The translations under genes and the position numbers were made by a program. 64,000 nucleotides of DNA, from NCBI GenBank assembly GCA_964188305.1, contig OZ076885.1; one strand, written 5' to 3'. The stretch is from Podarcis bocagei (Eukaryota). Under the pieces are notes generated by a model. It was not told where the DNA came from. It was given only the letters and a program-made list of their open reading frames with translations, and did not search any database. This document shows positions 30,376-64,000 of this stretch, one piece after another. Positions within the stretch are counted from its first letter, which is position 1; every line of letters starts with the position of its first letter.

Positions 30376-30539
30376 TGTACCCTTTCCCCTGCGAGGTGGA
30401 CCCATCAGTTTTTGAGGTGCCCCAGGGCTATACAATGTTGGGCGCAGGTCGTACAGAGCCCATGCGGGACGAGGATGATGACCTGCTCCAGTTTGCCATT
30501 CAGCAGAGCCTCCTGGATGCTGGCACAGAGACAGACCAG
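30376..30539 (+). CDS. ANKRD13D: ANKRD13D exon 13 (VYPFPCEVDPSVFEVP...UIM1...ETDQ)
   Basis: cag|tg...cag|gtgact. Confidence 0.94.
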
Positions 30540-31058
30540 GTGACTGGGAGGGCGGAAACCTGCCTGCGCTGGGGTGAAAACGGGTCCATTATAGCAGGGA
30601 GGCATGACTAACTGGTTCTTGGAGGGAGGGCACACGGTGCCAGGATGCTTGTGCGGGGACCAAGTAGAGGTTGGATTGAGTGGTGTAGCAAACTAACTCC
30701 CAGTTGTTGGCACTCAGAGTGGAGATAATTCTTGGCTGCCACTTATAAATGTAGCACTGAGTGCTTTGCAAACCTTGATCTCATTAAGGCCTTTACATCC
30801 CAGTAGGAACTGGTGATTATATATTTCCTTTTTGCATGTGTGCGTGTTTGTGTGAGGGGGTGGAACCTGAGGCCATCAGATTATGGCTTGCCTCAGACCT
30901 CCCAGAGAGTCCATGGCTTAACCAAAGCATTATGGCTTATTATTTTAGCATTATTCCAAGTCCAAGCCTCAAATTATTACCTGCTACAGCAGGAGCACAC
31001 ACCCATTCTGCCTCTTTGCTATCGGTTTTAGCATATTCATTCTTGTGTGTTACACCAG

Positions 31059-31138
31059 GTGACCATCTGGGAAGCTCTGACCAACACACGGCCAGGATCC
31101 AATCCTCCATCCTATGATGAGGAGCTACAGCTGGAACG
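31059..31138 (+). CDS. ANKRD13D: ANKRD13D exon 14 (VTIWEALTNTRPGSNPPSYDEELQLER)
   Basis: cag|gtg...cg|gtgagt. Confidence 0.94.
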
Positions 31139-34100: not shown

Positions 34101-35000
34101 CCATTCCCTGGTAACTTCAAAGCTTGGTTACTGAAATAAATTCTACATGGGAGTACCTTTGAAAACTGCCCAGAAACTGTAATTAATGCAAAATACAACT
34201 ACTAGACTGTGAAATGGGATGAGGTGTTTCAAACGTATCACCAACATTTAAACAACTGTACTGGCCCCTGGTTCATTTCTGAGAGCAATCTGAAGTGTTG
34301 GGCTTGGGGCCTGAAGAGTCCCCTAATCACAAGATGAGCCTTTCGATGAAGTAAGGTCAACTTTGGAGGGTCTTCACTGTGTATCCCCACCAGCTAAAGC
34401 CACAGTGGCCCAAAGGCCTAATTAGGCCCACCAGGGCTTTGAATTTGGCCATGAATTAAGCCTTCCAGGCCATTTTGGGCAAACCAGCTGTCAGGTTATC
34501 TTTGATGTAAAATGATGTGGAAATGCCCTGGAAAGTGTGAGATAACACTTGCTTTGAGATAACATCATCTAGCTTCCTTGCAAACCTTTAGATAGCAGGG
34601 AGATTAGACAAGGTTGGCTAACAAATGGGCATGGATGTTCAGTAAACAGGTAGCTTTGAAGCACCCTCAGTGTGAAAATAGGTGTATTACAATTACACAA
34701 AAAGCACTGTTTTTAACCTGTGAATTGTATTGATGCAGAGAGCACCAGAAAGCTATCAGGCACACTGGGAACCAGACTGAGCCAAAGGCCAGCCCATTTC
34801 TTTATTTTTTACTAGCATCCAGCAGGCTCTGGGCAGTTGTGTGGGAACGGAGGAAGCCCAGATTGGGCTTGGGGGTGTTGGGACATATCTGAGAGCAGCT
34901 TGAGCAAGCTTGCCTGAACCAGGCCTGAGAAGCATGACCAAGTAGCCATATCTTGCTGCCCTGTTTGCTGATGCCTCCTTCTCATTCTGTGTCCTCCCAG

Positions 35001-35280
35001 GGCTATCCAGGAGAGCATGTTCCTTCAGGCGGGGCCAGGCCTGAGCCCAGTGGAGTCTGGAGGTGGCAACGGTGGCGCTCCTCCTCCCGAGAGCAGCCCA
35101 CCTCTCAGCACCAATGGGGGTGGCTCCTCGGCCTTGCCCCCGCCCTACCCCAGCTTTGATGAGCAGCTGCGCTTGGCCATGGAGCTGTCTTCGAGGGAGC
35201 AGGAGGAGAGGGAGCGCCTACGCCGTGAGGAGGACGAGGAGCTGCAGCGCATCCTCCAGCTCTCTCTGACGGAGAAGTAG
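35001..35280 (+). CDS. ANKRD13D: ANKRD13D exon 15 (AIQESMF...UIM3, UIM4...LSLTEK*)
   Basis: cag|g gct atc; stop TAG ends at 35280. Confidence 0.95.
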
Positions 35281-44500: not shown

Positions 44501-45233
44501 CTGTTTTATCCCCAGGCCCATGCAGAGCTTGTCTGAGGCCTGGGGTGGGAGTCCCCAGTTGGCTAGGAGGCATGACAGTGCAAGTCTGGCAGACTTCCCC
44601 AGCCAGCTTAGCCCTCTGAGGAGTCAGTGCCATTTTTCTAGAAAAAGAGGTTCTGGAACTCTCCATGAACACCTCCCTCATTCTCTTAGAATGGCAGTGG
44701 TGCCCACCTGAGAGGTGCTGGGACTGAGTTCCGGAGAGTTCCGGCTGAACAAAAGCCCTCTGAGGGCCCCCTGCTCTGTGTGGACCTGCTTACCTCTGGA
44801 AGACCTAGGTGGCAGGGCCACCTCTACCATTAGGCAGAATAAGATGGCTGTTTTGGGCAGCATTTGCTGAGGAGTGTAGAGCACTCAGTAGAGTCGAGTG
44901 TAGAACTGAGTGTGCCATGTGATCTGCCTTGCAGTTCCCAAACCAGCCTGCTGCCCTCAGGTCCAAGGGAGGATGCTGTCCCATCTCCACTGTTCAGGTG
45001 ATATTCAGGGGCCTGCCTGGTTGGCTTCTGCATATGGAATAAGGGGAGCGGCATCTTGCCCCTTTGGCTCAGGAAGCAAAATGCCTTGGGACAGCCCTTG
45101 GTGGAAATGACCGTGTCTAGGAGATTGGTGCCACATGTGTGGAAACTTAGAGCATCGTTTAATCTGGAGCAGGAGATTTCTTCTTCTTTGCTCTGGATCA
45201 GAAGTGACTGATCTACCTGGAATTCCCTTGCAG

Positions 45234-45271
45234 GATGAAGAGCTTCCTCGGAAGAGACAGCTGCAGCGACG
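45234..45271 (+). CDS. SSH3: SSH3 exon 2 (DEELPRKRQLQRR)
   Basis: cag|gat...cg|gtaagg; phases fit both neighbours. Confidence 0.88.
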
Positions 45272-46019
45272 GTAAGGAGCTAGCCTTTGTAATCCTGTCC
45301 CTTCACACATACATACAAACAAAAAGGCCAGGGTCCTCCCAAACCATTTTATTAAAAAAATGTTTTGGATTTAGTGTGTTACTCCCAGTAGCAGGAACCC
45401 AGCACCAGAGTACACCCCCCCTTAAGGCATTTGGGGGGGGCAGTTGCACTTTGCAACTTATTTTTTAAAAGATGGTTCCAATGCTGGAGCTGCATCGTGA
45501 AGAAATGCAGAAGGAAGAGAGTATAAATATTCCAAAACAGTGCAGTGGGTAGTGGCGGTGCAGGAAGGTGGAGCATTGCTGCTGCTTCTTCTAACTTTAA
45601 AAAAAAACAACTAGTGCTGCACCAAGAGCCCCTGTACTAGAAAAATATAGTGTAGGAGTTCAAACAGGAAAAAATAGTTGATTTATTTTTACCCTGTTTT
45701 TCATGAAGCATCCAAAGTGGCGTACTACAAAAGATATCATAACAAATTAAACCGTTAAAAAAGCTACAGGTTAAAAAGACAGCAGTGACCCAGAGTAAAT
45801 TTAAATCATGAGACCATACTCTGGAATCAAAAATTAGCACACATTTAGGAGCATATTCTGGTGCCTTTCTAAGCTGAAGGGAGAGAGGGTGCCTGCACAG
45901 AGAAGACTCTTCTTGGTTACTGCCAAACACACATAAAAAGTGTGCCATAGCTCATTGTAATGAGCAAGAAGCAGAAAGGGAGCCTTCAGGTAATTGGTCC
46001 CAAACTGTTAAGGCAGTAT

Positions 46020-46250
46020 AGGTCAAAAGCAAAACCTTAAACCTGGGTCAGTAGCTAAGTGGCAGCTAATGGAGCTCTTGTAGGAGTGGTGTAATATGCA
46101 TGTGGTAAGGCACCCCGGTGAGTTGTCTAATTGTTGCATTTTGCACCAGTTGCAGCTTGCAGGGCAAGCTAAGGGCAGCCCCACATAAAGCACATTGCAG
46201 TAATCCAAACTCAAGGTTATCAATGCCTGAGTCACAGCAACCAACTGATG
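46020..46250 (-). mobile_element. L2-clade LINE ORF2 relic
   Basis: Minus-strand translation VTQALITLSLDYCNVLYVGLP matches the L2 ORF2 C-terminal motif (LDYCN.LY.GLP). Confidence 0.7.
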
Positions 46251-47309
46251 TGGGTGTTTGGTGGTGAGGAAGAGGAGAGAGTTGTGTTCCTCATTAATAT
46301 CCCATGACATTTGCAAAACCAAATTGTACACCGCAGTCCCAATTGCATTGGAGGGAAGAATTACATTTTCACAAGAGAAGTGCAATCTTGAGACAAGATT
46401 GTGTGCAGCAAAAGCATAACAACTGCATGTTTGTTGCTCTGAAAAGAGGGGAAAAACCTTGCAAAGAAGAGTGGGGAATAGGATAAATTATCTTGCAATG
46501 GAAAATGTGCACCAAACAAATACATGGGAGGATACTGTGCATTAAATATAAATGTACAGTATACTGGAAAGATCTCTAATTCTGGTGAACTGGAAGGATC
46601 TAATTCCCTCGTCCTCTGTAACAGAACTTGCCATCTTTTCAAACACCTTTGAACTCTACAGGTGGGGCAGGGGGGTGAGGTGAACAGAGAAATAATGACT
46701 GGGGGAACAGCTACTGCCCACTTCCCCTACTTCTCCTCCACTCTAAATCGCTTCCCCTAGATAATCTCTGCTTTTTGAAAAATGATGGGAGCACTGTTAA
46801 ACACAATAGTGTGTAGCATGTAGGGAGTATTATAGCCTTTTTGTCTAATTAGTCATGGGTTGGCAGTCATTTTTAGAGCACACATCTCTGTTTAAAAAGT
46901 GTGAGAAAAGCGGAGATTCGGCAAATAGTTTTTAAAAAATATTTTGAAAGGCACTCTTGGGGGGAATTCCTTATACTTTGTGTTGTTGTTTTTAAGTAGG
47001 TAATAAATCAATGTTGACATATTTTTCTTAAAAAAGGTTGCAATTTCTAAAATGCTTGCTTGTATTCCAGCTGAGTATAGCTAATATTGGTTATATGTTC
47101 CTTAGAATCAACGTTTTTCAACATTTTATTTTAAAATCTGATGTGATTTTCCAATATTCTGCCACCTCTGTATACATTTAATAGGCCTTAAGGCTTCTAG
47201 ATAGCACAACCTACCTAGTTTGCCTTGATGGCTAGGCCTGCCTCTCTTGGACTACTTCAGATTTTGTGACTGTTCTGTAATTGCAAATTGCTCCCAAGCG
47301 TTCATGGGG

Positions 47310-47492
47310 AAGGGCCGTAGTTCAGTGGTAGAGCACCTCCTTTTATACAGAAGGTCTCAGGTTCAGTCCCAGGCGTCTCCAGGTAGGACTGGGACAGATT
47401 CCCAGCCTGAAACTCTAGAGAGCTGCTGCTGAACAGTGTAGAAAACACTCAGTTCAATGGATCATTGTCAGGGTAAGGCAGCTTCCTGCATT
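47310..47492 (+). mobile_element. tRNA-derived SINE, degenerate
   Basis: 'gggccgtagttcagtggtagagcac...ggttcagtccc' head; tail 'gtaaggcagcttcctgcattc'. Confidence 0.65.
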
Positions 47493-47584
47493 CCCCCTTA
47501 GAATGAGGAAGGATTTAATGGGGCAAGCTCTCCTTCTGGCGCAAGAGGGTTTTTCTACCTATCTCCGTTTCTTTCCCTTTTCAG

Positions 47585-47774
47585 CCACAGCTTCGTCATG
47601 GTCAAAGGAGCTGCTTTGCTCCTGCAGGAAGAAGAAAAGCTGGAGTCTGTGCAGGAAGGCCCAGCCACCCCCCTGGACCACAAGCCTAAGAGTGAGAATG
47701 CCGCGGCTGAACAACAGGAGCAGCACTTACAGCAAATGGTGGGGTTGATGCGGCCAGAAGACAGCATCCGGCTG
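47585..47774 (+). CDS. SSH3: SSH3 exon 3 (HSFVMVKGAALLLQEE...RPEDSIRL)
   Basis: cag|c...ctg|gtgaga. Confidence 0.93.
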
Positions 47775-50297
47775 GTGAGACTGTGAGGGCAGGGAGATAC
47801 GGCAGAGTGTGGATGACAAGAGACAGGAAAGCAATTGGCCTGACCACAAAATGTGCCTCTTCGGATAAAGAGTCTGGAGCAGGCGGTTATGGAGTTCAGT
47901 GTTTTTGACTGCCTTGTAAAAGAGTTTGCTTGGGGCAGGGCCTTTGCCCTTTCCCCTCCTCCTGTTCTGGAATCAGCACGGTCTCCATTTCCACCCACTC
48001 AACCCTGCCAAGGCCCAACACCCAGGGCAAATTCCCTTCCCTGCCTGGCTCAGCATTGCTTACTATTGGAACAAAAAATATTCCAGCTTTCTGCTGCCAA
48101 GCCAGGCCAGTTTAAGATTCATTCTGTTCATCAAATGATCTTATCTTGACCTTCTGTAGTAACACCCACAAATTACAATTAAAGCACATGGCTTCACCCA
48201 CCCCAAAGAGCCCTGTAGGTTGGTGCTGTTTACTATAGGTCTGTGATTAGTAAACTATTTGTTTATTACTTATTAAACTTCTATACCACCCTCCATCCGA
48301 GGATCACAGAGTGATTTACAATATAAAAACACAAAAATACATAGCACAGTAACAAACAAATACAATAACATCCTCATCACCACAGAGTGTTTGTTTTATT
48401 TATTGCAGCTCCCATGGGAAGTTGTGACTATTAAGATGGTATAGCTGTGCTTTAAATGTATGTTAGTGGGATTCCTTTCCTTAATGGCATAAGTGCTTTC
48501 CTGCGCTCCTGTCCAGAGCCACCAGCTGAACCCAGTGTGCCATGCTGCTGTCCTACAGGCCTGGTTGGGCAAGCCGTGCCACAAGAGACAACTGTTCTGA
48601 AATGAAAGAGGGCTATTTTCTGCAGACACAATATTTCAGAAAAGGGAGGTGTGTGCCCTCAGGCTCCGGCCTAGTTCTAAGAGGCATTAAACCTGTGTCT
48701 AGACAGTATCGCTTCAGGCTGTGGGTGGGATTCACATGACTGAATCCTTCCATCGTGGGATCGCACCTGAAGCCTGAAAGGACACAAGTTTACTGCCTCA
48801 GTGAGAACGCCTTAGTGACCCAGATTGCTTCCCAGGCTAGTTCAGCTGGTCTGTGGAGTAGACACCCGACTATTAACTCCTTCCTCTTGACCTTGATCTT
48901 CACCTTTCTCCTCCTCTTAGCACGATTCTAGAATCTGTGTTGCCTCTTGCCTGGGAGTCCTGTGATAATATGATTCCGCTTTGCCTTCCTGCTGCAAAAC
49001 TCTGTGCTGGAGAGGCCTGGCTTCTGAGAGCCTCATTGTCCACGCTTGTGGAGGCTCAGAGCAGGGTGGCGAGGGATTCCTCTCCTTGAGGAATGTGGTT
49101 TTCAGCAGACATTCAGCCGGGAGCTGCAGCCACTTCCCCATTTATGGCCTGCGGGGCTTTTGCTCACTTGGGCAGACAGCCAGAGCTGGCGTCTCTGCCG
49201 AGTCTGATCCCGGCTTTGGCTTTGGGGACTCTGCTGGGAGATTTCCAAAGTAGCATGTGCTGGGTTTTCTTTCTTTTCTAGAGAGTGAGTCACAACAGCC
49301 TCCAGGTACCTGGGGCAGTTCCTGAAGGCAGCGGTTCTCATGCTGCTTTTTGGTAGCTGCTGATGTTCTCAGGAGCTTAGCAGACGTGGCTCATTCGGAA
49401 GTTCAGTAGCAGCAGACAAGCTGCCCTAAAAGATAGCTTGCTCCCCACTGCGGATCTTCCCTTGCAGTGTGGAAAATAGAGAATTAAATAAACAAACATG
49501 CATCTGTCCAGTATAATCTCAGTTCAGGCAAGTCAGTACTGAGGTCTCATATGCTTGTCTAGTGGTCCACAATAACACTCCCTGCCCCCTCTCTGTGTGT
49601 GTCTTCCTAGAACATGCCCCAAACCCCTTGGCAAAACTACTGAAGATCTATGGCATTTGCCAATGTGGAAAGTAAAAATGTGGAAAGAAAAATATGAAAA
49701 ACACTCCCATAACACTTAGGTCCAGAGGCTCTTCCCTCTGATCCTACCACGCAATGCCAAACTGCATTCACTTAATCCAGGGGTGGGGGGCCTTTTTCTG
49801 AAACTTCCCTTCTATTTCCTAATGATTTTGTGCTAAAAGCCTTGTATAATATGATTTTCAATGGATGATTTAATAGCTTTGAGAACCTCAGTGCCAGGGG
49901 CTCTTGGGCTCAGAGATGAAAATGTGATGCACTTATTTCTGGATAAATGTAAATGGAGTTTCTCCTCAAAACCCTTTCCCCCCTCGTACTGAAAAGTGCA
50001 CAAATGGCTACTGACAAAGGAACAAGGGGCACTCTGTCTTAGTCCTACTTGGATTATCCCAAGTTGCTATCTTATGTTATTTCCACACAAGTAACAATAT
50101 GATACTTAGCTATGACACTGGTCTCAGGAATCATGGAATTTTTTTCAGAAGTTGCTGGTGGTGCTAAACAAAGAACTATCCCTGGATCTGCCAAATGCAC
50201 CACCAACAGTTATGGTGGAATCTTACTGTCATATGTGTGGAGGTGACACACACAGGGACAGTCTTGCAAGGACTGTATGTTTGTTTCCCTCCTCCAG

Positions 50298-50416
50298 GCT
50301 GTGAGGCTGGAGTCGGCTCGAGCTCACCGGATCCGGTACTTGCTGGTTGTGTCAGCAGCAGAGGTGGAGAGCAAGAGTGAGATGGTGCTGCTGGGAGTTG
50401 ACTTCCCTGAAGAAGG
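50298..50416 (+). CDS. SSH3: SSH3 exon 4 (AVRLESARAHRIRYLLVV...LLGVDFPEEG)
   Basis: cag|gct...gg|gtgaga. Confidence 0.94.
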
Positions 50417-50707
50417 GTGAGATGACAAGGGAAGGAGCACGAAGAAGCAGAAGGGGTGGGGCCCAGGCACTTCTAAGCTAGAAAGCTTCCAGCTGTCTAT
50501 ACTGTCCTGCCTTGTATCTTCTGCATGATGTCTTTCATCAAGGCTAGGACCAAAATGAGATACCCAATAAGGTTCTATTCTTGACCCACTTGCCTGAGAA
50601 TAAGCCCCATTTAATTATATAGGACTTTCGTTCTGAGTAGACATGACTAGGATTGTGCTGAAAGTCTCTTAGACTACAGGCTGATGCATACTACTTCCTT
50701 GAAAGTA

Positions 50708-50958
50708 CCGTATTTTTTGCTCTATAAGACTCACTTTTTTCCTCCTAAAAAGTAAGGGGAAATGTGTGTGCGTCTTATGGAGCAAATGCAGGCTGCGCAG
50801 CTATGCCAGAAGCCAGAACAGCAAGAGGGATTGCTGCTTTCACTGCACAGCGATCCCTCTTGCTGTTCTGGCTTCTGAGATTCAGAATATTTTTTTTCCT
50901 CCTCCAAAAACTAGGTGCGTCTTATGGTCTGGTGCGTCTTATAGAGCAAAAAATACGG
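50708..50958. mobile_element. Tc1/mariner-superfamily MITE (third family)
   Basis: Perfect 23-bp TIRs CCGTATTTTTTGCTCTATAAGAC with TA duplication; internal palindrome. Confidence 0.88.
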
Positions 50959-51576
50959 TAAGTCCCATTGAATGCGGTGGATCTTACTTCTGAACAAACA
51001 TGCATAGGGAACAGGCAACATTCTCTGCTTCAATAACCAAGGTTGTGTTCCAAATTACCATTAGCCGAAGGCAAGTACCGTTGAAATTAATGGGGCATGC
51101 TTCCAAGAAAATGCACTTGGAAGAACACAACCCCTTTTCTCTCTGCATGATGTTTGTTCAAAACCCTTATCGAAAGCATCTTTGCTTCAGAGTGCTTTCT
51201 TTCTGTCCTTCGCTGTGTGTGTATCTAAACTCCTTAATGTATTTTACTCCCTGGTCGAACTGGTTTGGCAACCCTTCACCCAGTCTTTCCTCTCCACCCC
51301 ATTCCCAATGTCTGTGCTCCAGAAGAACCTTTGTTTATGTATTCCGTAAGGGCACAGGCACGCGAGCATGCCGCAGGAAGACGTCCAAATCAAGGAGCTG
51401 AATGGAAGATAGCTGTGCAGTTCGCCAAGCAGCTCTGTCACAGCTCTGGAATGCTTGCTTGGCTTTGCTATCAGTGATTTTTACAATGCTGATCAAGCTA
51501 TTGAAAAAGCAGGTTAAGAGGCGAGTGCAGATGGGGTGAATGGGGAACGTTTGTAGGACAAGCACAGGGACCATAA

Positions 51577-51825
51577 CAGGGGTCAGCAAACTTTTTCAGC
51601 GGGGGGGACCAGTCCACTGTCTCTCACACCTTGTGGGGGGCTGGACTATATTGGAGGGGGGGTGAACGAATTCCTATGCCCCACAAATAACCCAGAGATG
51701 CATTTTAAATAAAAGCACACATTCTACTCAGGTAAAAACACACTGATTCCTGGACCATCTGCGGGCCGGATTGAGAAGGCGGTTGGGCCAGATCCAGCCC
51801 CCGGGCCTTAGTTTGCCTACCCATG
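51577..51825. mobile_element. hAT-type MITE
   Basis: TIRs CAGGGGTCAGCAAACT / AGTTTGCCTACCCATG; 8-bp TSD GACCATAA / GACTATAA. Confidence 0.8.
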
Positions 51826-51879
51826 GACTATAATAACCCCTTCAGTAGCTACCTGATCTCTTCTCTCTTTACCTCCCAG

Positions 51880-51951
51880 CTCGGCTGCCTGCACACTGGG
51901 GATGGTGCTTCCACTTTGGAGTGACACTCAGGTCTTCCTTGATGGCGATGG
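51880..51951 (+). CDS. SSH3: SSH3 exon 5 (SAACTLGMVLPLWSDTQVFLDGDG)
   Basis: cag|c...gg|gtaaga. Confidence 0.95.
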
Positions 51952-52814
51952 GTAAGAGACAGACCTAACCCCACCAGGCACCCACAATGCTCCATGTAAT
52001 TGTAATCCTCATATAAGCTCTGTGCTTTGCAAACAAACTAGGATACTCAAACAGACTGAGATAGTGAGAGGCCATTTTTTTGGTGTGTGTTTATTTTTCT
52101 CCTCGCCCAGTTTCACCAACACTGCCTGCTCTCTCATCTGACTTGAAAATGGTCTCCACAGACTACAAACCACTTACGTCCTGAATAGCTACGGGAGAGT
52201 TTGTGTTTTTTGCTGTCTCTCCCTCCAGTATTAAATGGAAACCAACCATTCTTTTTTGCATGGTCTCTCTTTCTTAAAAAGTCTCCTTGAGAGCCTGCCC
52301 CATGCTGTGTCTCATCTTATGGTTGTTGTTGTTAATAATAGCCATGTAGCACCACTAATGTGCACAGCTTTATTTCAGTGAGTCATTCTTGTGTTTAGTT
52401 CCATGATGGAAGAGGACTAGGGTATGTGTGTTCATGCCAAACTTTTCACAGGAAAGGTATGTTTTGAAGGAAATCCAAGAAGGTCTACTTCACACAGGTT
52501 TCCTGGAGAACAGTTCTAGGCATAAGGGGCAAAAGGGGGTAAAAGGCAGAGTCATCTGAGTTAGCAGGAGAGCTTCAGGCAGTTGAAGGTGGTTGAGCTT
52601 GAGGTACAAAGGCCTTGAGTGGCCATATTTGGGGATAAAAGAGCAAAGAGATGGACTTCTGGGCCTTAATTAGCCGTGTTTAGGGAAGTTTTTAATGTTT
52701 GATGTTTTATTCTGTTTTGAATCTGATGAGAGCTGCCCAGATTGGCTGGGGAAACCCAGCCGGATGGGAGGGGCATAAATAAATGATGATGATGATTATG
52801 ATGATAACAAAATT

Positions 52815-53015
52815 TAAAAAATCCTTCCAGTAGCACCAGTAGCACCTTAGAGACCAGTAGCACCTTCAGATACATTGAGTGTATCTGCAGAAGTGTGCAT
52901 ACACATGAAAGCTCATACCAATAACAAACTTAGTTGGTCTCTAAGGTGCTACTGGAAGGATTTTTTTTATTTTGTTTCCACTATGACAGATCAACATGCC
53001 TACCTACCTATAACT
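52815..53015. mobile_element. Penelope-like element relic with inverted terminal repeat and degenerate hammerhead
   Basis: Inverted arms 'atccttccagtagcacc...ttagagacca' / 'tggtctctaaggtgctactggaaggat' enclosing GTAT-CTGCAGA-stem-GAAAGCTC-ATAC. Confidence 0.65.
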
Positions 53016-53958
53016 AGATGATGATGATGATGGAGGTCTAACTAGGGTTCAGGGCCAACCCAATGTATTTTGGGGGTTCAGGCAAAAAAAAAAAAAAACA
53101 TAAATCCAAATTGTACCTTCCAAAAAAAAAAATAGATAAATAAAAAGCAGACACTTTTCCACCCTTCAGTGCATTTGCCATTTCAAAAAAATCAGAACTC
53201 CTCAAACAGGACACTGGTCAGTCACTAAACCACAACTGCAAGCAATCAGACTTTCAGGTTTCCTTGTCCAGAAGGGAAATCAATAGCTCCCTGAAAACTC
53301 CAGGCTAGTTTACACTGCATAGTCAGGAAAGTCACAGGAGCATTCCAACAGCTGAGGGGCAAACCCACAATGCAGGCCTCGTCATAATACCGCACATAAA
53401 ATACAACCGTCTGTTTAACTTCCAGAGTTACACAGATACTGCTTTGCAACTTACTTTTCTGGCTCCCCGCCCCCTCCTGAGGAAAAGTAATCACAGTCTA
53501 AACTCAGTGGGGCCTGACAACTGGCCTGGTCTCAGTCGAGTTGTTAGAATTTTCCATATTTAACTTGTCCCCTGCAGAAAACTTTATGGTTAGAATGAGA
53601 GAAAAATAATTTATTTGCTGAGGCTGAGAATTTTTAGAAGGATTAAGCAGTGCAGAAGAAGCATACCTAAAATATTGACTTCAGCTGGCGCCATCCTTTC
53701 TAGAATGCGTACATTAAGGTTGTTGCCATTGCACAAGGCAAGAAGCAACACTATCCTGACTTTTAGATCTCAAGAGCAGAAAAGGATCAGATTCTCTTTT
53801 TTGCTTACAAATGGAACCTGGCACCATAGAAGATCTCAAACTAGTTTCACAACTGTGCCAAGTACTGCATTGTTATTTGCCTCTTTCCGTATACCTGCAT
53901 CTCAGGTGGAGCGCTCCCAAGTTACTTGTGACACTGCTCTCCCCTTCTCTTTCCCCAG

Positions 53959-54024
53959 GGGCTTCAGTGTGACGTCTGGTGGGCAGACCCGTATCTTTAA
54001 GCCCATTTCAGTCCAGACCATGTG
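53959..54024 (+). CDS. SSH3: SSH3 exon 6 (GFSVTSGGQTRIFKPISVQTMW)
   Basis: cag|g...tg|gtaagc. Confidence 0.95.
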
Positions 54025-54248
54025 GTAAGCAAGGCTGTCAGGTAGGGTGAAAAGCGCAAGGACATGTGTGGGAAAGGATGAATGTGGGGAACAAGGATAT
54101 AGTTGCCACTATTGCTTTGGGTAGGCTGGGAGAGGGGCATTATGGAGGAAAAAGGGAAGAGAGATGTGCATTTCTCTGATGGCAGTGGTAGCCTTCAGAG
54201 GATTTTTTTAGCGCATCTCTGATGTCTGATTGTCATCTCTGCTCTCAG

Positions 54249-54443
54249 GTCAGCGCTGCAAGTGCTGCACAAGGCATGCAGCGAAGCTGTCTGCAACAAC
54301 CATTTCCCAGGAGGCAGTGCGTTGAGCTGGACCGAGTGGTATCAGAAGGCTGTGAACTCGGAGCAGAGCTGCATTAATGAATGGCTAGCCATGTCCGACT
54401 TGGAATCTGTGCGGCCCACTTCTCCTGCAGCCTTCTCTGACCA
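54249..54443 (+). CDS. SSH3: SSH3 exon 7 (SALQVLHKAC...SPAAFSDQ)
   Basis: cag|g...ca|gtcagt. Confidence 0.92.
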
Positions 54444-55140
54444 GTCAGTGATGGCCCTTCCCCTCCTAGGGCTGGTTATAGGCTGTGAATGATGTAGTCA
54501 GCAGAGCTGCAGTGGTTCCAAGGTGGAACTCGATACCATGCAGTAGTCCAAAGCACAGACATTTCAGGTGGCCCTGCTAGCCAGTTTTAGGGACTACTGT
54601 GCAGAAAGTTCTTCTACAGGTCATGAAAGGGAAGGGTCCTTGTTTTTGTTTTTTTGTAATAATGAGGGAGGGAGGGAGATGCTGATCAGAGACACAGATC
54701 AGAGCAGAAGCCCACCCCCAGTTCAGGTCACGTAGCATCACTTTTTGTGGTGCACTGGAGTGGAGTGGTTTGGGTACCAAACTAGTACTTGAGAGAGACC
54801 CAGGTTAACATTCTTACCCAGCCATTGAGTTCACATGGTGATATTGGGTCAGTCAGAGCCTAACCTACCTCACAGCAACTTGTGAGGATAAAATTGAGGT
54901 GTGTGGGGGGGGGAGTAATAAATAAGGCCCTCAGAGGAAGCTCAGGATATACATGCAATAAATGAACGAGCACATTTACAAATGCGTAAAAGCTATCTAG
55001 GGAAATGCAAAGCTTTGGCATGGTGTCAAGATTTGTAACCCTACTGCCAATGGGGGAGGGATTCTCTAGGTGTGTCATGGTGTCTGGGGCAGAGTCTGGC
55101 GAGCCAAGAGCTTTGCCGACCCTCCGTCTCTGTGCCTCAG

Positions 55141-55234
55141 GCCGACAGCACAGGAGATGACAGAGCGGATGATCCGGGCCAAGCTGCGTGAGGTGATGGC
55201 CACCACTGACCTGGAGAACATCACCTCCAAGGAG
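55141..55234 (+). CDS. SSH3: SSH3 exon 8 (PTAQEMTERMIRAKLREVMATTDLENITSKE)
   Basis: cag|g...gag|gtggga; DEK-C domain. Confidence 0.93.
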
Positions 55235-55501
55235 GTGGGATGTTGGGCCAAGGGGGTGAGGGAGGAGGGGCCGGGGGAGAGAGAATGTGAGGGAATGGAG
55301 ACGTGGGGGGGGGTGTGAGAGAGAGAGGGGGTATGGGAGCAAGATATGTAAAACGGACTGGGAAGGGAATGTGGGAAAGCAGGGTTATGTATAGGGGTTG
55401 GAGTGATGGGTGAGGGACAGGGAATGGGCATGTCATTAAAAAGCAGCCAGGCTCAAAAGGGACCTCAGGCACTCACAAGCTCCCTCCCTCTCTTCCTGCA
55501 G

Positions 55502-55630
55502 ATCCGTACAGAACTGGAGCGGAGAGCCGGTCGGAGCCTGAACGACTATAAGGAGTTTATTGACAATGAAATGCTTCTCATTATGGCTCAGATGGATCGG
55601 CCCTCCAGGATTTTTGACTATCTCTACTTG
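55502..55630 (+). CDS. SSH3: SSH3 exon 9 (IRTELERR...SRIFDYLYL)
   Basis: cag|atc...ttg|gtgagg. Confidence 0.95.
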
Positions 55631-56400
55631 GTGAGGAAGTACAGGAAAGGGATCCATGATGCCAGCAGACTGGAGCTCCAGGCCCCTAAAAATGGCAGTC
55701 CCTCCTCTCAAGAGTCCTCAAAATTATTTCCTGGAATGGCAGGAAGATGGAAGTCTTGCCGTTATTTTGAGGCCTCCAGGCTTTGCCTTCCCTTCCACCA
55801 TAAAAGGAAGCAAAGCCCCCTGTAAAGCCTCTCCCTTTTACTACCTACAGGGCCTTCTTGAGAGATAGCATGGGGCAGCAGATTTATATTCTTTACTTCA
55901 TACAAAGTTGAAAATCACAGCAAGCAGCTAAGGCTGCAATCCTAAATGGATGGTTTGCACTGAAAAGGCTCCATCTTTGGTGGCCATCAGTCTAGCCTCA
56001 ACAGGTGGTGGAACATACAGAACAGCCTTGGAAGCTGACCTAAGAAACTGGACAGGCACTATTAAATTAGTATACCGCCCTATACCTGTAGGTCTCAGGG
56101 CGGTTCACGGTTACTCCCTCACATAAAAATCACAACCAAGCACTTGATCAGGAAGATGACTCTCTGCTATCTTTCTACATGCTGGCAATTTTTCTGTTGG
56201 GTGCATATTCAAAACCTCAGTTCCTTCACCTGCCCAGTCTGCAGTGGTATAAGCTAGGAGGGACTCTACCACATGATTTGGCCAAATGTGTTCGGTTTTG
56301 AGTATTTAATGAGCATTTGCAGGATGGCTGAATGTTTGTGAACTATTTGCACTCACCTGGGACTGAGCTCTGTGAATGGTGTTGTTCCTTTTTGTCCCAG

Positions 56401-56447
56401 GGCTCTGAATGGAATGCAGCCAACTTTGAGGAGCTTCAGAGGAACAG
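56401..56447 (+). CDS. SSH3: SSH3 exon 10 (GSEWNAANFEELQRNR)
   Basis: cag|ggc...ag|gtatgt. Confidence 0.95.
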
Positions 56448-56743
56448 GTATGTCACCAAAAGATGCTGCTCGGAGAGCAAAACTAGTACCTTCGGGAACT
56501 TCATCTGATCTGGATTCCTTGGACACTGAGATGACCATTTGACACACCTCTCCGTGTAAATTTGCCTTCTAGTCAGAAGGGATTTCTACTATGCATTCCA
56601 ACCCGACTCTGAGATACTGAGCAACTGCAGTGGGGGATGTTTAGGAAATGGGACATGGTTTAGTTAGTTGAGGCCATGCTAAAAACATGGTGAAAAAAAG
56701 CTGCTCACATTCTCTGTTGATTACTCCTTGCCTTGCCTTACAG

Positions 56744-56890
56744 GGTCAGCCACATCCTTAATGTCACCCGTGAGATCGACAACTTCTTCCCAGAGCACTT
56801 TACGTACATGAATGTCCGGCTCTACGATGAGGAAACCTCACAGCTGCTGCCACACTGGAAGGAAACCTACAACTTCATTTCAGCTGCCTG
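56744..56890 (+). CDS. SSH3: SSH3 exon 11 (VSHILNVTREIDNFFPEHF...YNFISAAW)
   Basis: cag|g...tg|gtgaga. Confidence 0.95.
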
Positions 56891-58047
56891 GTGAGAAGTG
56901 GACACCAAAATGGTAGTTGCGATTTCAGCTGCAGCACTCATGTATTGCAAGCTTGGCTTACCAACATGGTCCCCATCTAGTCAACGGGATTGCAGGCACA
57001 GAAATGGGCTTTTCAGTGGGAATCCAAGGGCTGAGGTGGAAGAGGAGGGCTCTTGTCACAAAAAGCCCCCACCTCCCTGAATGAAATGTCAGCTGTTGTT
57101 TGAGAGGACCTGTGATACCAGGTAGGACTGTCAGCCCATTCTCTCCTTTCACCCCAGAATATTTTGCAGGTGAGAATTTGGCACAGCCCATGATGATGAT
57201 GATCCCATCAGACTGGGTTGCCCCAATGCACCCTCTGCTTCATTAAGAAGTACAATGCCATCAGTTCCTAGCTTTTGATCTCTGTCAGATTTGACACAGC
57301 CAGTTACTCGTTTGGAAGAGCAAGCAGCTGAATCCAGCCATCTCCTCCCATATTGGAGGATTCATAGCTCAGAGCTACAATCACCACTGCTGGAAACAAT
57401 ATCTGGAAATTCCCATTGTTGCCTTAGCTCATCATTCAGGAAACTGTGACCCCCCTCTACATGATGTTGGACTGCAACTCCCATCAGCATGGCTAATGGC
57501 CAGGAATGATGGGGGTTAAGACTTCAACACCATACGGAGGGGCAGAAGTTCCCCATCCTTGCCCTAGCTATATCTCTGCTTCATTTATTTTTATTACTAC
57601 ATTTATATATCACCTTTCCTCCAAAGATCTCAGGGTAGCACATACTGTTTTCCTTTCCCCCAGTTTATCTTCACAACGACCCTGTGAGGTAGGTTAGGCT
57701 AAGAGATGGTGACTGGCCACAGCGAGCTTGCTTCCTGGCCAAGTGGGGACTTAAACCCTGGTCTCCCAGGTCCTAGTCCACCACTCTAACCACTACACCA
57801 CACTGGCTGTTGAACAACCATTATGTTTTCCAAGCAGCAAGGATAGTCAGTCACTTGGATTCATCATGATCACAGCACAGTGGCCTTAGCATAATATACC
57901 TAATCTGTGCCTTGGCAAGTGTTGAGTTAGGCCAAGAAGCTGGGGTATCCTACTCTTGGCTGAGGGTACAGCAACTGGATGCTGAACTTCCTGACTGTCC
58001 TGGGTGATGTTGTAGCCTTGCTTATAGCAAATATTCATTCCCCACAG

Positions 58048-58248
58048 GGCACAAGGCTCTCGGGTGTTGGTGCACTGCAAGATGGGCGTGAGCCGCTCTG
58101 GCTCCACAGTGATTGCATATGCCATGAAGGAGTATGGGTGGTCACTTGAGCAGGCCCTTTCTCATGTACGGGAACGACGCCCAATTGTCCACCCCAATCC
58201 AGGATTCATGAGACAGCTGGAGCTTTATCAGGGCATTCTGGACGCAAG
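58048..58248 (+). CDS. SSH3: SSH3 exon 12, catalytic motif ([20 protein letters not shown]...GILDAS)
   Basis: cag|g...ag|gtaaac; HCx5R. Confidence 0.96.
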
Positions 58249-58648
58249 GTAAACCCAAGGGGAGGGAGTGCAGGTCTGGTCACTGTGTATGTATGTGGGG
58301 AGGGCAAGGGAGACTGATGGGAGCTGCAGCTGACCAGCCTGATCAGACCACAGCAGAAGGCTTTGTTGTTATTGTCCAAGGACCAAACTACATGTTACAT
58401 GCAACAGCATGATTATCCTCTTAGACTGGAAAATCTACTTTCAGTGTGGCTATTGGGATCAGAGAAGATCTCCCTTTCCTGGGATTCTAAGCACCTGTGT
58501 GCAAAGGCAAACAGGAAATATTCCGTGTGGAAAAAAATGATGGGGGTGCCAAAGAGTGGCAAGGAAAAGATCCGGCATCCATGCCAACTGCTCCATTTCC
58601 AACTTCCACTCCAGAGCACTTCTTCCAGTTAAAAAGGGCTGTTTCGTA

Positions 58649-58890
58649 CAGTGGTACCTCGGGTTAAGTACTTAATTCGTTCCGGAGGTCCGTACTTAAC
58701 CTGAAACTGTTCTTAACCTGAAGCACCACTTTAGCTAATGGGGCCTCCCGCTGCTGCTGTGCCACCGTAGCACGATTTCTGTTCTCATCCTGAAGCACAG
58801 TTCTTAACTTGAAGCACTATTTCTGGGTTAGTGGAGTCTGTACCCTGAAGCGTATGTAACCTGAAGCGTATGTAACCTGAGGTACCACCG
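58649..58890. mobile_element. Tc1/mariner MITE, same family as 10310-10543 in opposite orientation
   Basis: TA|CAGTGGTACCTC ... GAGGTACCACCG|TA; body is the reverse complement of the 10310 copy. Confidence 0.88.
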
Positions 58891-59121
58891 TATTGCTATG
58901 CACACAATATTTAATCTTAAACAGGGAGGCACTGATAGCAAAGTTGTCCCACACTAATAGTGCAGCAAAAATTAAATAGACATTGTGATTATCTTTAATA
59001 TGTGTAATTAATGCTTCTCACTGTAACTGACCGGATTCAAAGTCCATTCTTTATTTGGCTCTTTATTTAGCATTCCTTGCTGAATAATCTCTTACATTGT
59101 TCACCTCATGTTACTACGCAG

Positions 59122-59557
59122 CCGACACAGCAGCCTATGGGAACAAAAGGCAGGAGATGCCCACTCAGAAGGTTCTCCAGATATAAGTGATGCCAGCAGT
59201 GATCCTTCAGGAAGCCCATACTATGAGACTTTAAGCTCAGAAGAAGAACCAGAGGAGCCAGTGACAACCCCCCAGTATTGCTTTCGTCCTTTGCGGGAAC
59301 CTCCTGAAGAACCTCACCATCCGGTGGACCTTCCTGATAGTCCCAGGCTCAGTCTTCAGGCCACAGAAGAACCTGGGGCATCGGATGACTCTGGAGCTGA
59401 GGAAGTGCGAAGACACCTGGCTACGATGAGAGTGCCAGAGAAGCCAGCCACGCTCAGACGGGAACGCATCAATCTCTATGCTGTCATGCGCAGCATCAGT
59501 GAAATGGACAGCCCAGAACGCCACATCTCTGTACCAGAGTGTGCTGCTGAGGAAGAG
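59122..59557 (+). CDS. SSH3: SSH3 exon 13 (RHSSLWEQK...AAEEE)
   Basis: cag|c...gag|gtaaga. Confidence 0.92.
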
Positions 59558-59781
59558 GTAAGAGGGTCATGTAAGGGCATGCTTCCAGAGAGAGGCAAGT
59601 GGAAAGAGTAAGGGAACTTATAATGGAGCCTCAAGGCATACAGGGGAAACAAAAATGGCAATGGATAAATCAGTGGATCTGAAACCTCAGCTAATGCGAA
59701 GATGAATGGTAGAGGCAGGATGAAGGAAAACCCTTTGTAATTGCTGGCCCTCATTCAATCTACCTCTTCTTCCTCCAACAG

Positions 59782-60285
59782 GTATTTCTTCATGATGAAA
59801 AGAAGAAGACTGTGACCTTTGAGCCATTTCCCCGAAATGAAGAGAATTCAGGGTCAGGAACAGACTCTACAGCAAAGGCGCCACTGCCAGAGGAAGAGGA
59901 GGCTCAGGGTCGCAGGGCCAGGCGACGCGGGCGGAGGGCTCACCGGGGACGTCGCCATGTTTGCAAGCAGCTTTCATACTACCCGGCACCAGGCAGGGTG
60001 CGCAAAGTTGTCCAGCGCATGGAGGGCCCTGTCCCATTTGGCCGCAGGCCCGCCTTACAACACCGGCTCTCTGTGGCTCAGCTGGCTGATGCTGCCCTGG
60101 TGGTGAGCCGGGCCAAGGAGTTTGAGGGACACACAGATCCCGAAGGACCAGACAAGCTCCGGTCCCCTTCTCCTCAGGAATCCAAACCTGAGGAAAGCAC
60201 TGCCCTCTGTTCTTCCTTGCCCTGCTCCCGGTCCCGGCGGATGGTTCGCCAGGCCAGCGTAGACATGGACCCCAACTCAGGGTGA
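59782..60285 (+). CDS. SSH3: SSH3 exon 14 (VFLHDEKK...RQASVDMDPNSG*)
   Basis: cag|gta; stop TGA ends at 60285. Confidence 0.92.
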   Translation, partial: VFLHDEKKKTVTFEPFPRNEENSGSGTDSTAKAPLPEEEEAQGRRARRRGRRAHRGRRHVCKQLSYYPAPGRVRKVVQRMEGPVPFGRRPALQHRLSVAQLADAALVVSRAKEFEGHTDPEGPDKLRSPSPQESKPEESTALCSSLPCSRSRRMVRQASVDMDPNSG

Positions 60286-62069: not shown

Positions 62070-62950
62070 AAAATACCGGAAGTAGCTCCCTGTATGTCAC
62101 TCTACTAGTGAAGTCTATGCTACCTAGCGAGTAACTGTCTCGTTCTCGCCGCTAGGTGGATGTTGAAACAAAACTACCATAACCATCATGCCCTGCGGCC
62201 ACGGCAAGGAGGTGGGGACTAGGACACATGCGCAAAACGCTCTTTCCTTGTTGCTATGGGAGCCTACGGCAGGGCAGCTGCTGGGAAGAGGTAGAATCCG
62301 CGTTCTCTTTTGTTCCTCCGCTGCGACGGCGGCATTTTGGCACCTGTCGCGACTCTTTCCCGGCTGGGGTTTGCGCCGGCGGCGGCCCCTCGTTGCCATG
62401 GCGGCGGCGGCGTTGCCTCTCGCGTGCTAAAGATGCCCCGGGAGACGGCGAGGGAGGCAGCGAGACCTCCGCCTGGGAGGATGTCGCGTCCGCAGATCAT
62501 CCACAGCGGCCACTTCATGGTGTCGGAGCCCCACGCCGACCCGGACCCGGACCCCGAGGCGGCTCTGAGCCAGCCAGGCCAAGGCGCCCCGCCGAGCGCG
62601 GCGGAGCGAGCGAGAAGGGCCGGCTCCGCGCGGAAGGCCGCGGGCGGGAAGGCTGGTGACGGGGCCCAGCTGACCTCCGCCGCCGCCGCTTACGACTTCG
62701 ACACGGTGGACGAGGCCGCGTGCCTGTGCTACCGCTACGGGCCTCGAAGCAGCGGAGCCCTCAGCATCGACCCTTCGCTCACGAAGCTCTTCGAGTGCAT
62801 GACGCTCGCCTACAGGTAAGGGCGGGGCGGGCAGGGCAGCCCCCGAGCGAACGGGGCACAGCGGGAAGTGTGTGTCTGGGGGGAAATGTGGAGAGACACA
62901 GTAAGAAGGGATAGAGAAGGGCCCGCGCGGTGGCTTCCTTTCTTGCCTCC
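62070..62950. promoter_or_regulatory. CpG island / promoter of the Mondo-family gene
   Basis: ETS CCGGAAGT 62076-62083, CATGCGCA near 62226, dense CpG through exon 1. Confidence 0.8.
62433..62815 (+). CDS. First coding exon of a Mondo-family (MLXIP/MondoA- and MLXIPL/ChREBP-like) transcription factor; start is ATG 62433 or in-frame ATG 62481
   Basis: Encodes MCR1 QIIHSGHFMVS, YDFDTV and MCR2 SIDPSLTKLFECMTLAY; phase-2 donor tac ag|gtaagg at the LAYS position; remainder lies beyond the window. Confidence 0.9.
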
Positions 62951-63739
62951 GGCCCTTGCCTCTCGGGATGCATTCAGGGAACCAGACTATGCCTTGGGGT
63001 TACAGAGTGCCTGCTGTGGGAACTGCAGCACGACCAATTAGCCTGCCATTCATACGCAAGATATACTAGTATGCATGCAGATAAACGATACTCATAAGAG
63101 AATCCATCGGCAGGTAACTTGGCATCGTTAAGTAAAAGCCTCGGATTCCTTGTAACTACAAACATAAAGGGCATTTTCACCCAAGAAGGCATTTCAAAGG
63201 CGCAGCTTGCCTTTGTCGTGTCTGCCATGCCAAGTTAAAATCTAAATGAGTGTATAAATCTAGATTTGCAGCTGCCAGTTAAGAAGTGCTCCCCTGCAAC
63301 CTTTCCTTCCACTTTAAGAACTTTCACTTATGGTAGGGAGGTTCTCAGGCATCACGTGTGAGAACAGAGTAGTCAAGGAATGAAACTGACATTTTAGAGT
63401 CAGAAACGCATACATCTGTTGAAACCAACAAATCCGGTTTTGTAGTTAAAAAAGAAAGCAGGGGGGCTAGATATGACATAGAGTTGGGCCTGGTTCTCCA
63501 GCATTCTACTGCCACTTGCTTTCTGGCACAGTATTCTTTCTTTCTTTACTCACTCACTGGTTGCAGTTCTACACACAAGGGATTAAAATCAATGAATAAG
63601 TCTCATTGAACACCGTAGGAGTTACTTCTGAGAAAAGGTGCAGAGGATTGCACTGCTACTTATTTTACTGTATTTGCAAGGTACCCAATAGCGTCTCTAG
63701 TGGCATATGGGAATATGTTCGTATAAGCACAGCATAGAG

Positions 63740-64000
63740 CAGTGTTTCCCAACCTTTTTTGGGCAAAGGCACACTTGTTTGATGAAAAAAATCTCGCGGC
63801 ACACCACCATTACAGCCCCGAGACATCAGCGCGCAGCGTCACGCCGGGAGGGACGCACGAAAGTGAAAGTTTTCAATTTTTTCCCCTCCCCCTTGCCGGG
63901 GAACCTCCAAGCTTTGGGGGTGGGGGGGGAGGAGGCAGCAAAGCGAGGGACTGAGGGACCCTAACCCTAACCCTCACCGATCACCCGGGAAAGCATGCGA
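63740..64000. mobile_element. Left end of a hAT-type DNA transposon (runs off the window)
   Basis: Begins CAGTGTTTCCCAACC after the hAT-like target GCATAGAG; CpG-rich; right TIR not visible. Confidence 0.65.

Follow-up and report, generated by a model that had tools for sequence, protein, structure and literature searches.

Results

A Mondo-family first exon in Podarcis bocagei

The DNA analysed here (the window) is a stretch of 64,000 nucleotides from contig OZ076885.1 of the Podarcis bocagei assembly GCA_964188305.1, and it is free of N. Near its 3′ end, at positions 62150–64000, lie what we regard, with high probability, as the promoter, the first coding exon and the beginning of intron 1 of a genuine and intact third vertebrate Mondo gene, with a function that we infer below. 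Sugar sensing in animals depends centrally on the transcription factors MondoA (the product of MLXIP) and ChREBP (the product of MLXIPL, also called MondoB or WBSCR14), which have been studied almost entirely in mammals, where these two genes are present. We use c3 as a working name for the third gene; the window holds its exon 1 and 1.2 kb of its intron 1 only.

The coding part of c3 exon 1 extends from 62433 to 62815 on the plus strand, exactly where the original prediction had placed an exon encoding the Mondo conserved regions MCR1 and MCR2. Its frame is open throughout (127 codons plus 2 bases) and its donor is intact. Upstream of the ATG at 62433, which has an A at −3 as read from the sequence, no other in-frame ATG occurs back to a TAG at 62292. 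A second in-frame start, Met17 (62481–62483, also with an A at −3), opens the peptide MSRPQIIH..., with which the c3 proteins of snakes, turtles, ostrich (a ratite) and salamanders begin; it is the conserved start in most species. The splice donor GT, read directly at 62816–62817 in the context CAG/GTAAGG, begins a phase-2 intron: the final codon is split after its second base (AG) and is completed as Ser in relatives, where the protein reads ...LAY-S-EKLVSPKWKTFKG. The remainder of the window (62816–64000, plus strand) is intron 1, holds no further c3 exon and is collinear with positions 10385–11549 of the Podarcis raffonei locus (L001) at 97–99% identity. A short telomere-like run, CCCTAACCCTAACCCT, is found in this intron at about 63959–63975.

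Exon 1 encodes two conserved regions separated by a variable one, all on the plus strand. MCR1 (RPQIIHSGHFMVSEPHAD, 62487–62540) is 90–100% identical within c3 and 65–70% identical to MLXIP/ChREBP, and has SEPHA in place of SSPHS; its core motif (xIHSGHFMVS) is present as RPQIIHSGHFMVS at 62487–62525 and aligns with all Mondo proteins sampled. It is followed by an acidic, Pro/Ala-rich linker (62541–62690), which is 2–38% identical among c3 orthologues. MCR2 (YDFDTV...YRYGPRS...SIDPSLTKLFECMTLAY, 62691–62813) was recognised by alignment with MLXIP, MLXIPL and invertebrate Mondo proteins and by a match to PDB 5F74. It contains the export-type motif SIDxSLTKLFECMTLAY; the LTKLFECMTLAY motif at 62778–62813 matches, by alignment, the nuclear-export motif of MondoA/ChREBP. 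A Pfam search with the exon 1 peptide returned no family spanning the MCR region.

The exon lies in a CpG island (62150–62950) with a GC content of 0.67, an observed/expected CpG ratio of 0.97 and 87 CpGs, against 0.59 and 0.42 in the flanking 0.8–0.9 kb. This island, which is unmethylated-looking in its composition, covers the presumed c3 promoter, the 5′ untranslated region (UTR), exon 1 and the start of intron 1. Tandem E-boxes resembling the carbohydrate response element (ChoRE; CACGTG-N5-CACGTG, at most 3 mismatches) occur 14 times in the window, where 13.9 are expected, and not at all at 54–64 kb. As E-box pairs are at chance level, we rejected them as a sign of c3 regulating itself in the manner of the ChREBP-beta promoter; unlike ChREBP, c3 shows no sign of a ChoRE-driven internal promoter in the window.

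Two sets of gene models propose other protein starts. In Zootoca (P0127, P0238 and P0239), the protein is about 60 aa longer upstream of the ATG (MRRTLFPCCYGS...). The homologous open reading frame (ORF) of the window, at 62228–62659, is in a frame different from that of exon 1, and the extension is therefore probably an annotation artefact or species-specific. In P. muralis, a predicted isoform X2 (P0241, 621 aa) lacks MCR1–3 and starts in the exon 2–3 region (L001 14792–15276). We considered it as a short isoform of the ChREBP-beta kind and set it aside: its start maps outside the window and the gene model is its sole support.

The complete gene in close relatives

The window and the P. raffonei locus are collinear, with about 96.5% DNA identity, which rises to 99% in exon 1 alone. 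The exon 1 peptide is 96.9% identical to the N-terminus of P. raffonei XP_053255426 ("MLX-interacting protein-like isoform X2", 759 aa), and it differs from the P. raffonei, P. lilfordi and P. muralis proteins. Compared with P. raffonei, the exon carries four substitutions (one at codon 2, before Met17, and three in the linker) and one 3-nt indel, also in the linker.

The P. raffonei gene covers 12.7 kb, over which tblastn places 14 segments spanning nearly all of the 759-aa model without a break; exon 2, which starts S-EKLVSPKWKTFKG, lies about 4.3 kb downstream of exon 1 (L001 14704). MCR3–5 and the helix-loop-helix-leucine zipper (HLH-Zip), which the original prediction expected of the downstream exons, are present and intact in this nearest relative, as is the C-terminal domain. 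Full-length c3 models are available in three Podarcis species, in Lacerta and in Zootoca. The amphisbaenian Rhineura, whose group is the nearest to lacertids, carries c3 as well as ChREBP.

Distribution of c3 among vertebrates

The exon 1 peptide was compared by phmmer with 1.84 billion representative proteins. This search gave 111 matches at E ≤ 1e-3 (best E = 2.7e-29), well above what chance would give, and those that are named or placed in our tree all belong to the Mondo family. The best matches are c3 proteins, not MLXIP or MLXIPL, and those from Lerista, Phrynocephalus, Ambystoma and king vulture extend over the whole of exon 1. The signature MVSEPHA is confined to c3 proteins among the 111 matches.

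For full-length comparison the query was the Phrynocephalus c3 protein, and in these protein searches 8000 candidates were scored and the best 120 listed. Among the matches listed, c3 proteins form a discrete block running from 1781 down to 566 bits, made up of many squamates, tuatara, turtles, crocodile, ostrich, emu, three caecilians and two salamanders. Immediately below stands one lungfish c3 at 530 bits, and true MLXIP proteins follow from about 476 bits downward. The lungfish protein (P0191, 876 aa) is 73% identical to a Protopterus "MLX-interacting protein-like". Lungfish c3 occurs as an uninterrupted 2.6-kb ORF with UTR-like flanks on contigs of 3.7–3.9 kb from two runs (SRR6291289 and SRR6291290), and these contigs look like mRNA. 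The Microcaecilia c3 gene spans 140 kb.

Judging by these matches, c3 is retained in lungfish, caecilians, salamanders, lepidosaurs, turtles, crocodilians and ratites. The original prediction had the gene kept in squamates; retention there is borne out, and the scope was too narrow, as tuatara and all the non-squamate groups just named keep it too. Public databases label c3 "MLX-interacting protein-like", an automated name of the kind that had been anticipated, or "MLX-interacting protein isoform X.." or "hypothetical protein"; some tortoise c3 and the emu c3 are called "carbohydrate-responsive element-binding protein-like".

Phylogenetic position

A maximum-likelihood (ML) tree was inferred from 52 sequences and 680 columns under LG+C20+F+G4 and rooted on invertebrate Mondo proteins. 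It places c3 in a clade of its own (support 100/99), next to clades of MLXIP and MLXIPL (100/100 each), in agreement with the proposal that the exon belongs to neither. The MLXIP clade, in which shark, ray-finned and lobe-finned sequences come together, does not include c3, and neither does the MLXIPL clade. Each has its own sauropsid members; MLXIPL, for instance, includes squamate, turtle, crocodilian, bird and caecilian sequences. Within c3, lungfish branch first, then amphibians, then turtles with crocodile and ratites on one side and tuatara with squamates on the other. Since this branching follows the species tree, we treat the c3 proteins as orthologues.

The three genes also coexist. 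They lie on different contigs in Struthio (ostrich; contigs of c3, MLXIP and ChREBP: 84.6, 21.2 and 22.8 Mb), in Microcaecilia (772.9, 208.5 and 103.9 Mb) and in Carettochelys (127.3, 32.8 and 27.4 Mb), as expected of a third gene and not of a copy that was translocated. On these assemblies, an ostrich, a caecilian and a turtle each have three Mondo genes, on different chromosomes.

In the rooted tree, c3 is sister to the group formed by lamprey, MLXIP and MLXIPL (94/88). The approximately unbiased (AU) test rejects a grouping of c3 with sarcopterygian MLXIP alone (delta lnL 68.6, p = 2.5e-5). Because this late-duplication topology is rejected, c3 should be at least as old as the radiation of jawed-vertebrate MLXIP.

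Conservation of the protein modules

The modules of Podarcis c3 were compared with those of six other c3 proteins, from python to lungfish. Identity is 90–100% in MCR1, 73–87% in MCR2–4, 47–90% in MCR5 and the GRACE-like block, 49–76% in the HLH-Zip and 50–87% in the C-terminal domain, while it is 2–38% in the linkers and 21–52% in the centre of the protein. This pattern indicates that c3 is under purifying selection, because conservation tracks the functional modules across lineages that split about 400 million years ago.

MCR3 (RDKIRLNNAIWRAWY), MCR4, MCR5 and the GRACE-like block lie beyond the window; all c3 proteins have them, among them the orthologue P0128, which shares 97% identity over exon 1. 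The C-terminal dimerisation and cytoplasmic-localisation domain (WKFWxFS...LFESY...LPxLRP) is likewise present in c3 orthologues. The N-terminus of c3 matches residues 1–196 of ChREBP as crystallised in PDB 5F74 (E = 1.9e-61), and the 14-3-3-binding helix of MCR3, RDKIRLNNAIWRAWYLQYVEK, is identical at 19 of 21 positions to the ChREBP peptide in PDB 4GNT, 6YGJ and 9GCP.

The gene thus resembles both of its known relatives without coinciding with either. Like MondoA, c3 has MCR1–5 with the GRACE-like block, a variable centre, the HLH-Zip and the C-terminal domain in that order; MCR2–4 of Podarcis c3 are 71% identical to those of ostrich MLXIP, and QIIHSGHFMVS, YDFDTV and LTKLFECMTLAY are shared. 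The two differ in clade and locus, in the segment between MCR1 and MCR2, where MondoA has SPHSEHPPKK-G and c3 the long acidic linker, and in the basic region, which in tetrapod c3 lacks His5 and Glu9. ChREBP shares with c3 the crystallised N-terminus and the 14-3-3 helix, and the loop of the c3 HLH is closer in length to that of ChREBP than to that of MondoA. The HLH-Zip of c3 is 47–48% identical to that of ChREBP, and its C-terminal domain 47–49% identical to those of ChREBP and MLXIP. ChREBP also forms a separate clade at a separate locus; in tetrapods it lacks the YDFDTV of MCR2, which c3 keeps, and its basic segment RRITH (of the Thr666 type) is replaced in c3. Finally, invertebrate Mondo proteins (Drosophila Mio, C. 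elegans MML-1, amphioxus Mondo) have the same modules and represent the single-copy ancestral state, and amphioxus Mondo has a long MCR1–MCR2 linker as c3 does. Unlike tetrapod c3, the outgroup Mondo proteins aligned have the canonical H-E-R basic region, and in the rooted tree c3 is a vertebrate duplicate.

An altered basic region in tetrapod c3

The canonical basic region of Mondo proteins reads RRITHISAEQKRRFNIKLGF, and that of Podarcis c3 reads RRSTLTSADYARRRVISSGF. Seventy-three tetrapod c3 sequences cover this region. The canonical His at position 5 has become Phe in 55 of them, Leu in 9, Ser in 5 and Pro in 3, and is kept in 1; the canonical Glu at position 9 is Asp in 72 and Asn in 1; and the canonical Lys at position 11 is replaced by Ala, Thr or Val. 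The canonical Arg-Arg at positions 12–13 is kept in 74/74 covering sequences, and Ser7 is nearly invariant. Tetrapod c3 proteins consequently lack the full signature of a canonical basic HLH-Zip (bHLHZ) protein (His5, Glu9, Arg13), though their HLH-zipper is present and Arg13 is kept. Lungfish c3 (P0191 and P0243; loci L003 and L004) keeps the canonical His, Glu and Arg and has the full signature. The change in the basic region is therefore dated to the tetrapod stem, as the lungfish proteins are canonical and those of tetrapods are not; this stem branch is long (0.36).

The Pfam HLH profile tells the two groups apart as well. It scores 20–24 bits in the three tetrapod c3 proteins tested, with a match that starts only at profile position 12 in two lizard proteins, and 40–49 bits in lungfish c3, MLXIP and ChREBP, where the match begins at position 1. 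A deletion of the basic region in c3 was considered and rejected, since the alignment shows the region to be present and substituted. The residue register was confirmed independently against Mad (PDB 1NLW), a weak match used for register only; a PDB search returned no bHLHZ structure of ChREBP or MondoA with Mlx, and gave Tye7 and Mad only, as weak matches.

Glu9 makes the strongest base contact and is present in every bHLH protein that reads a CA core, and bHLH proteins that lack it, HIF1A, SIM and AHR among them, recognise non-canonical half-sites (PMC8431614). In the SCL:E47 complex, the conserved glutamates make the sole base-specific contacts (PMC3714592). Because Glu9 is replaced in tetrapod c3 and bHLH proteins that read a CA core all have it, E-box reading is predicted to be altered or weakened, a prediction to which we give even chances.

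Genomic neighbourhood

Upstream of c3, on the same strand, lies a Slingshot (SSH3-like) phosphatase gene (45216–60282, plus strand), whose exons match emu SSH through the stop codon and are collinear with the SSH genes of emu and P. raffonei. Its TGA, at 60280–60282, is 2.15 kb before the c3 ATG. Pfam recognises in its ORFs PH_SSH1-like (54247–54426), DEK_C (55352–55822) and DSPc (56721–56891 and 58028–58249). Before it, the window holds the last exons of a gene of the ANKRD13 family (30402–35215, plus strand), which match the end of emu ANKRD13 by tblastx at 66–91%; in the emu gene itself, Pfam identifies Ank repeats and ANKRD13_C. At 6–9 kb there are GRK-like exons that include a PH domain.

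The position of c3 next to SSH3, as the original prediction described it, recurs in other species. In P. raffonei c3 stands between the SSH3 gene and POLD4, and in emu the order is ANKRD13 – SSH – c3 – POLD4 – glycine-acyltransferase-like – CNTF/CLCF1-like, with an identical order in king vulture. Collinearity of the window extends to the Podarcis locus and, at the protein level, to the emu locus. In human, we take the order at 11q13.2 to be ANKRD13D – SSH3 – POLD4 – CLCF1, with no Mondo gene between SSH3 and POLD4; SSH1 and ANKRD13A presumably lie on 12q24, on the same arm as MLXIP.

Some further observations concern the neighbourhood only. In birds (emu, king vulture), one or two glycine N-acyltransferase-like genes fill the interval from POLD4 to the CLCF1-like gene. 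Two copies of a dispersed and probably SINE-like repeat, each about 220 bp long, are found in the window, at 10333–10547 (plus strand) and, in the opposite orientation, at 58647–58864. These copies are located in introns of the GRK-like and SSH3-like genes and are 85–92% identical to L001 28085–28310, near POLD4 of P. raffonei. At about 2850–2960, adjoining (TG)n and (GA)n microsatellites give CVCVCV and RERERE in the translations.

Discussion

The analysis shows the identity of c3, its clade, its synteny, its intactness and its residue changes, and we consider it very likely that c3 is a real and functional third paralogue of the Mondo family. This differs from the published picture. According to McFerrin and Atchley (2011; PMC3177325), the Mondo genes of vertebrates number only two. 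Singh and Irwin (2016) found in vertebrate genomes, including a reptile and birds, a single MLXIP and a single MLXIPL and no other (PMC4766361). No description of a third vertebrate Mondo gene appeared in our full-text literature searches, whose coverage of the literature is incomplete, or in a 2025 preprint on bird MLXIPL. In the literature "MondoB" is a synonym of ChREBP, and "MLX-interacting protein-like" always means mammalian MLXIPL. Since the c3 gene models are public, the third gene is apparently known to annotation pipelines and unknown to the field.

Several points weigh against the reading of c3 as an ancient third gene that is intact and working here and elsewhere, with an altered mode of DNA reading. 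In P. bocagei, the intactness of c3 past exon 1 is deduced from a congener that is 96.5% identical, and neither in this genome nor in any other lacertid did we locate MLXIP and MLXIPL as separate genes. As for distribution, no c3 from a mammal, frog, ray-finned fish, shark or coelacanth is found among the matches listed, which come from protein searches and not from genome searches. The absence of c3 in mammals, frogs and fishes other than lungfish is accordingly provisional. The idea that mammals lost the gene agrees with this result, at the level of protein searches. In birds, the ratite c3 proteins sit on a long branch and bird c3 is changing faster than other c3, so that it may be under relaxed constraint or decaying. 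The king vulture copy (GCA_037962945.1, L005 10001–14448, P0074) occupies the ANKRD13–SSH–c3–POLD4 interval, is flagged LOW QUALITY and shows changes at invariant residues (HSGRFMAS, a shortened YRYGP, LAKLSEC) in a model without the HLH-zipper; it looks degenerate, which may reflect a decay in neognath birds that parallels the absence from mammals, or else a poor assembly or gene model. With respect to origin, the AU test rejects neither c3 as sister to MLXIP (p = 0.19) nor c3 as sister to MLXIPL (p = 0.105), and a long-branch effect of the long c3 stem could underlie both the basal placement and the AU rejection reported above. Finally, the strict conservation of Asp9 and Arg-Arg shows that the basic region is still constrained, and DNA binding may persist.

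What c3 does can be proposed from its conserved residues, from which we infer its control by glucose, its binding to 14-3-3, its pairing with Mlx and its altered reading of DNA. The exon 1 peptide, with its MCR1 and MCR2, would form together with MCR3–5 the low-glucose inhibitory and glucose-response module. When sugar is low, MCR1–4 and 14-3-3, bound through the nearly unchanged helix, would hold c3 inactive in the cytoplasm; sugar phosphates would release it, as they do ChREBP and MondoA, and c3 would pair with Mlx through its HLH-zipper and its C-terminal dimerisation domain. That c3 is a sugar- and 14-3-3-regulated partner of Mlx seems to us rather probable. The following step is more tentative. 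In tetrapods, the c3:Mlx dimer is predicted to recognise a non-canonical half-site beside the CAC half-site of Mlx, or to bind DNA weakly and compete for Mlx, and c3 could then be a sugar-regulated modulator or competitor and not a standard ChoRE activator. Two modes of action are described for bHLH proteins without Glu9 (PMC8431614): the partner takes the CAC half-site and they a non-canonical one, or they sequester the partner. By analogy, c3 with Mlx could work in either mode. The analogy has its limits: the bHLH-PAS partners HIF1A, SIM and AHR and the Id proteins, in which the canonical Glu9 or the basic region as a whole is missing, are homologous to c3 in the HLH fold only, while the basic region of c3 is retained under constraint, with Asp9 and Arg12-Arg13. 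We offer with low confidence the picture of tetrapod c3 as a re-engineered Mondo protein, sugar-gated and Mlx-pairing, that reads a new half-site or titrates Mlx away from ChREBP and MondoA; a competitor or new-specificity role with physiological weight is doubtful.

The alternative that survives best accepts the gene and questions only its reading of DNA: tetrapod c3 could be an ordinary ChoRE-binding, glucose-activated activator, with basic-region changes that are neutral. The near-invariance of Ser7, Asp9 and Arg-Arg, which marks the region as constrained, is in line with this; besides, Asp retains the carboxylate of Glu, the Arg13 that reads the central CG is kept, and all other modules of c3 are conserved. 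On the other hand, all bHLH proteins that read a CA core have Glu9 while the others bind non-canonical half-sites (PMC8431614), His5 is lost, Lys11 has given way to Ala, Thr or Val, the Pfam HLH profile does not align to the basic region in the two lizard proteins tested, and the change was fixed on a long stem branch. We therefore see ordinary activation as a serious possibility, although on balance somewhat unlikely.

A second alternative concerns the age of c3, which could be a real gene that arose by a later duplication of MLXIP in lobe-finned vertebrates and then diverged fast, and not in the early genome duplications. Its appeal comes from the distribution, as c3 is known from sarcopterygians only, among the matches listed; from the lungfish c3, which scores 622 bits against MLXIP and 602 bits against tetrapod c3; and from the phylogeny, where a sister grouping of c3 and MLXIP is tolerated by the AU test and the basal placement could be an artefact of the long stem. 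Nevertheless, the tree that such a history calls for, with c3 joined to sarcopterygian MLXIP alone, is the one that was rejected; the MLXIP of sharks and of ray-finned and lobe-finned vertebrates forms one fully supported clade (100/100) without c3; and c3 resides in a different conserved block, ANKRD13D–SSH3–POLD4. The presence of SSH1 and ANKRD13A with MLXIP on human 12q24 would be the pattern of a block duplication. A late origin from MLXIP is thus improbable. We most simply read c3 as a whole-genome-duplication paralogue, a reading that fits the data and agrees with the original proposal of an ohnolog, with MLXIP, MLXIPL or both as its possible sister.

According to a third alternative, c3 of this genome would be a relic, decaying or silent, with no working gene to follow its conserved first exon. 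Only exon 1 is visible in the window, and the king vulture copy, with MCR residues and the HLH-zipper lost in a low-quality model, offers a precedent. However, exon 1 is intact in its start, motifs and consensus donor and lies within an unmethylated-looking CpG island; its 99% identity to P. raffonei exceeds the ~96.5% of the flanks, with the changes falling in the linker save that at codon 2; and full-length models exist in the three Podarcis species, Lacerta and Zootoca. A relic is very improbable. Least probable of all, to the point that we dismiss it, is that the exon is the ordinary MLXIP or MLXIPL of the lizard moved beside SSH3, with no third gene: the automated names ("MLX-interacting protein(-like)", "carbohydrate-responsive element-binding protein-like") and the failure to locate separate MLXIP and MLXIPL in this genome would fit, but c3 falls outside both clades (100/100 each), all three proteins are found in ostrich, Microcaecilia and Carettochelys and c3 with ChREBP in Rhineura, and c3 keeps its place between SSH and POLD4 from lizard to birds.

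A third Mondo gene, conserved for at least about 400 million years, since the split between lungfish and tetrapods, and across most non-mammalian land vertebrates, changes the two-gene picture of the family. Comparisons of sugar and lipid metabolism that involve reptiles, birds or amphibians cannot assume the two-gene network of mammals, and the label "MLX-interacting protein-like" is easily confused with MLXIPL in orthology tables and expression studies. In tetrapods, c3 also constitutes a natural experiment, in which an intact sensing module is combined with an altered DNA-reading head, and it bears on how Mondo:Mlx dimers choose their targets and on the competition of partners for Mlx. If c3 is indeed the sugar-gated modulator proposed here, the endotherms that lost it (mammals) or in which it is apparently decaying (at least one neognath bird) would have been left with one level of control fewer in their sugar-response network.

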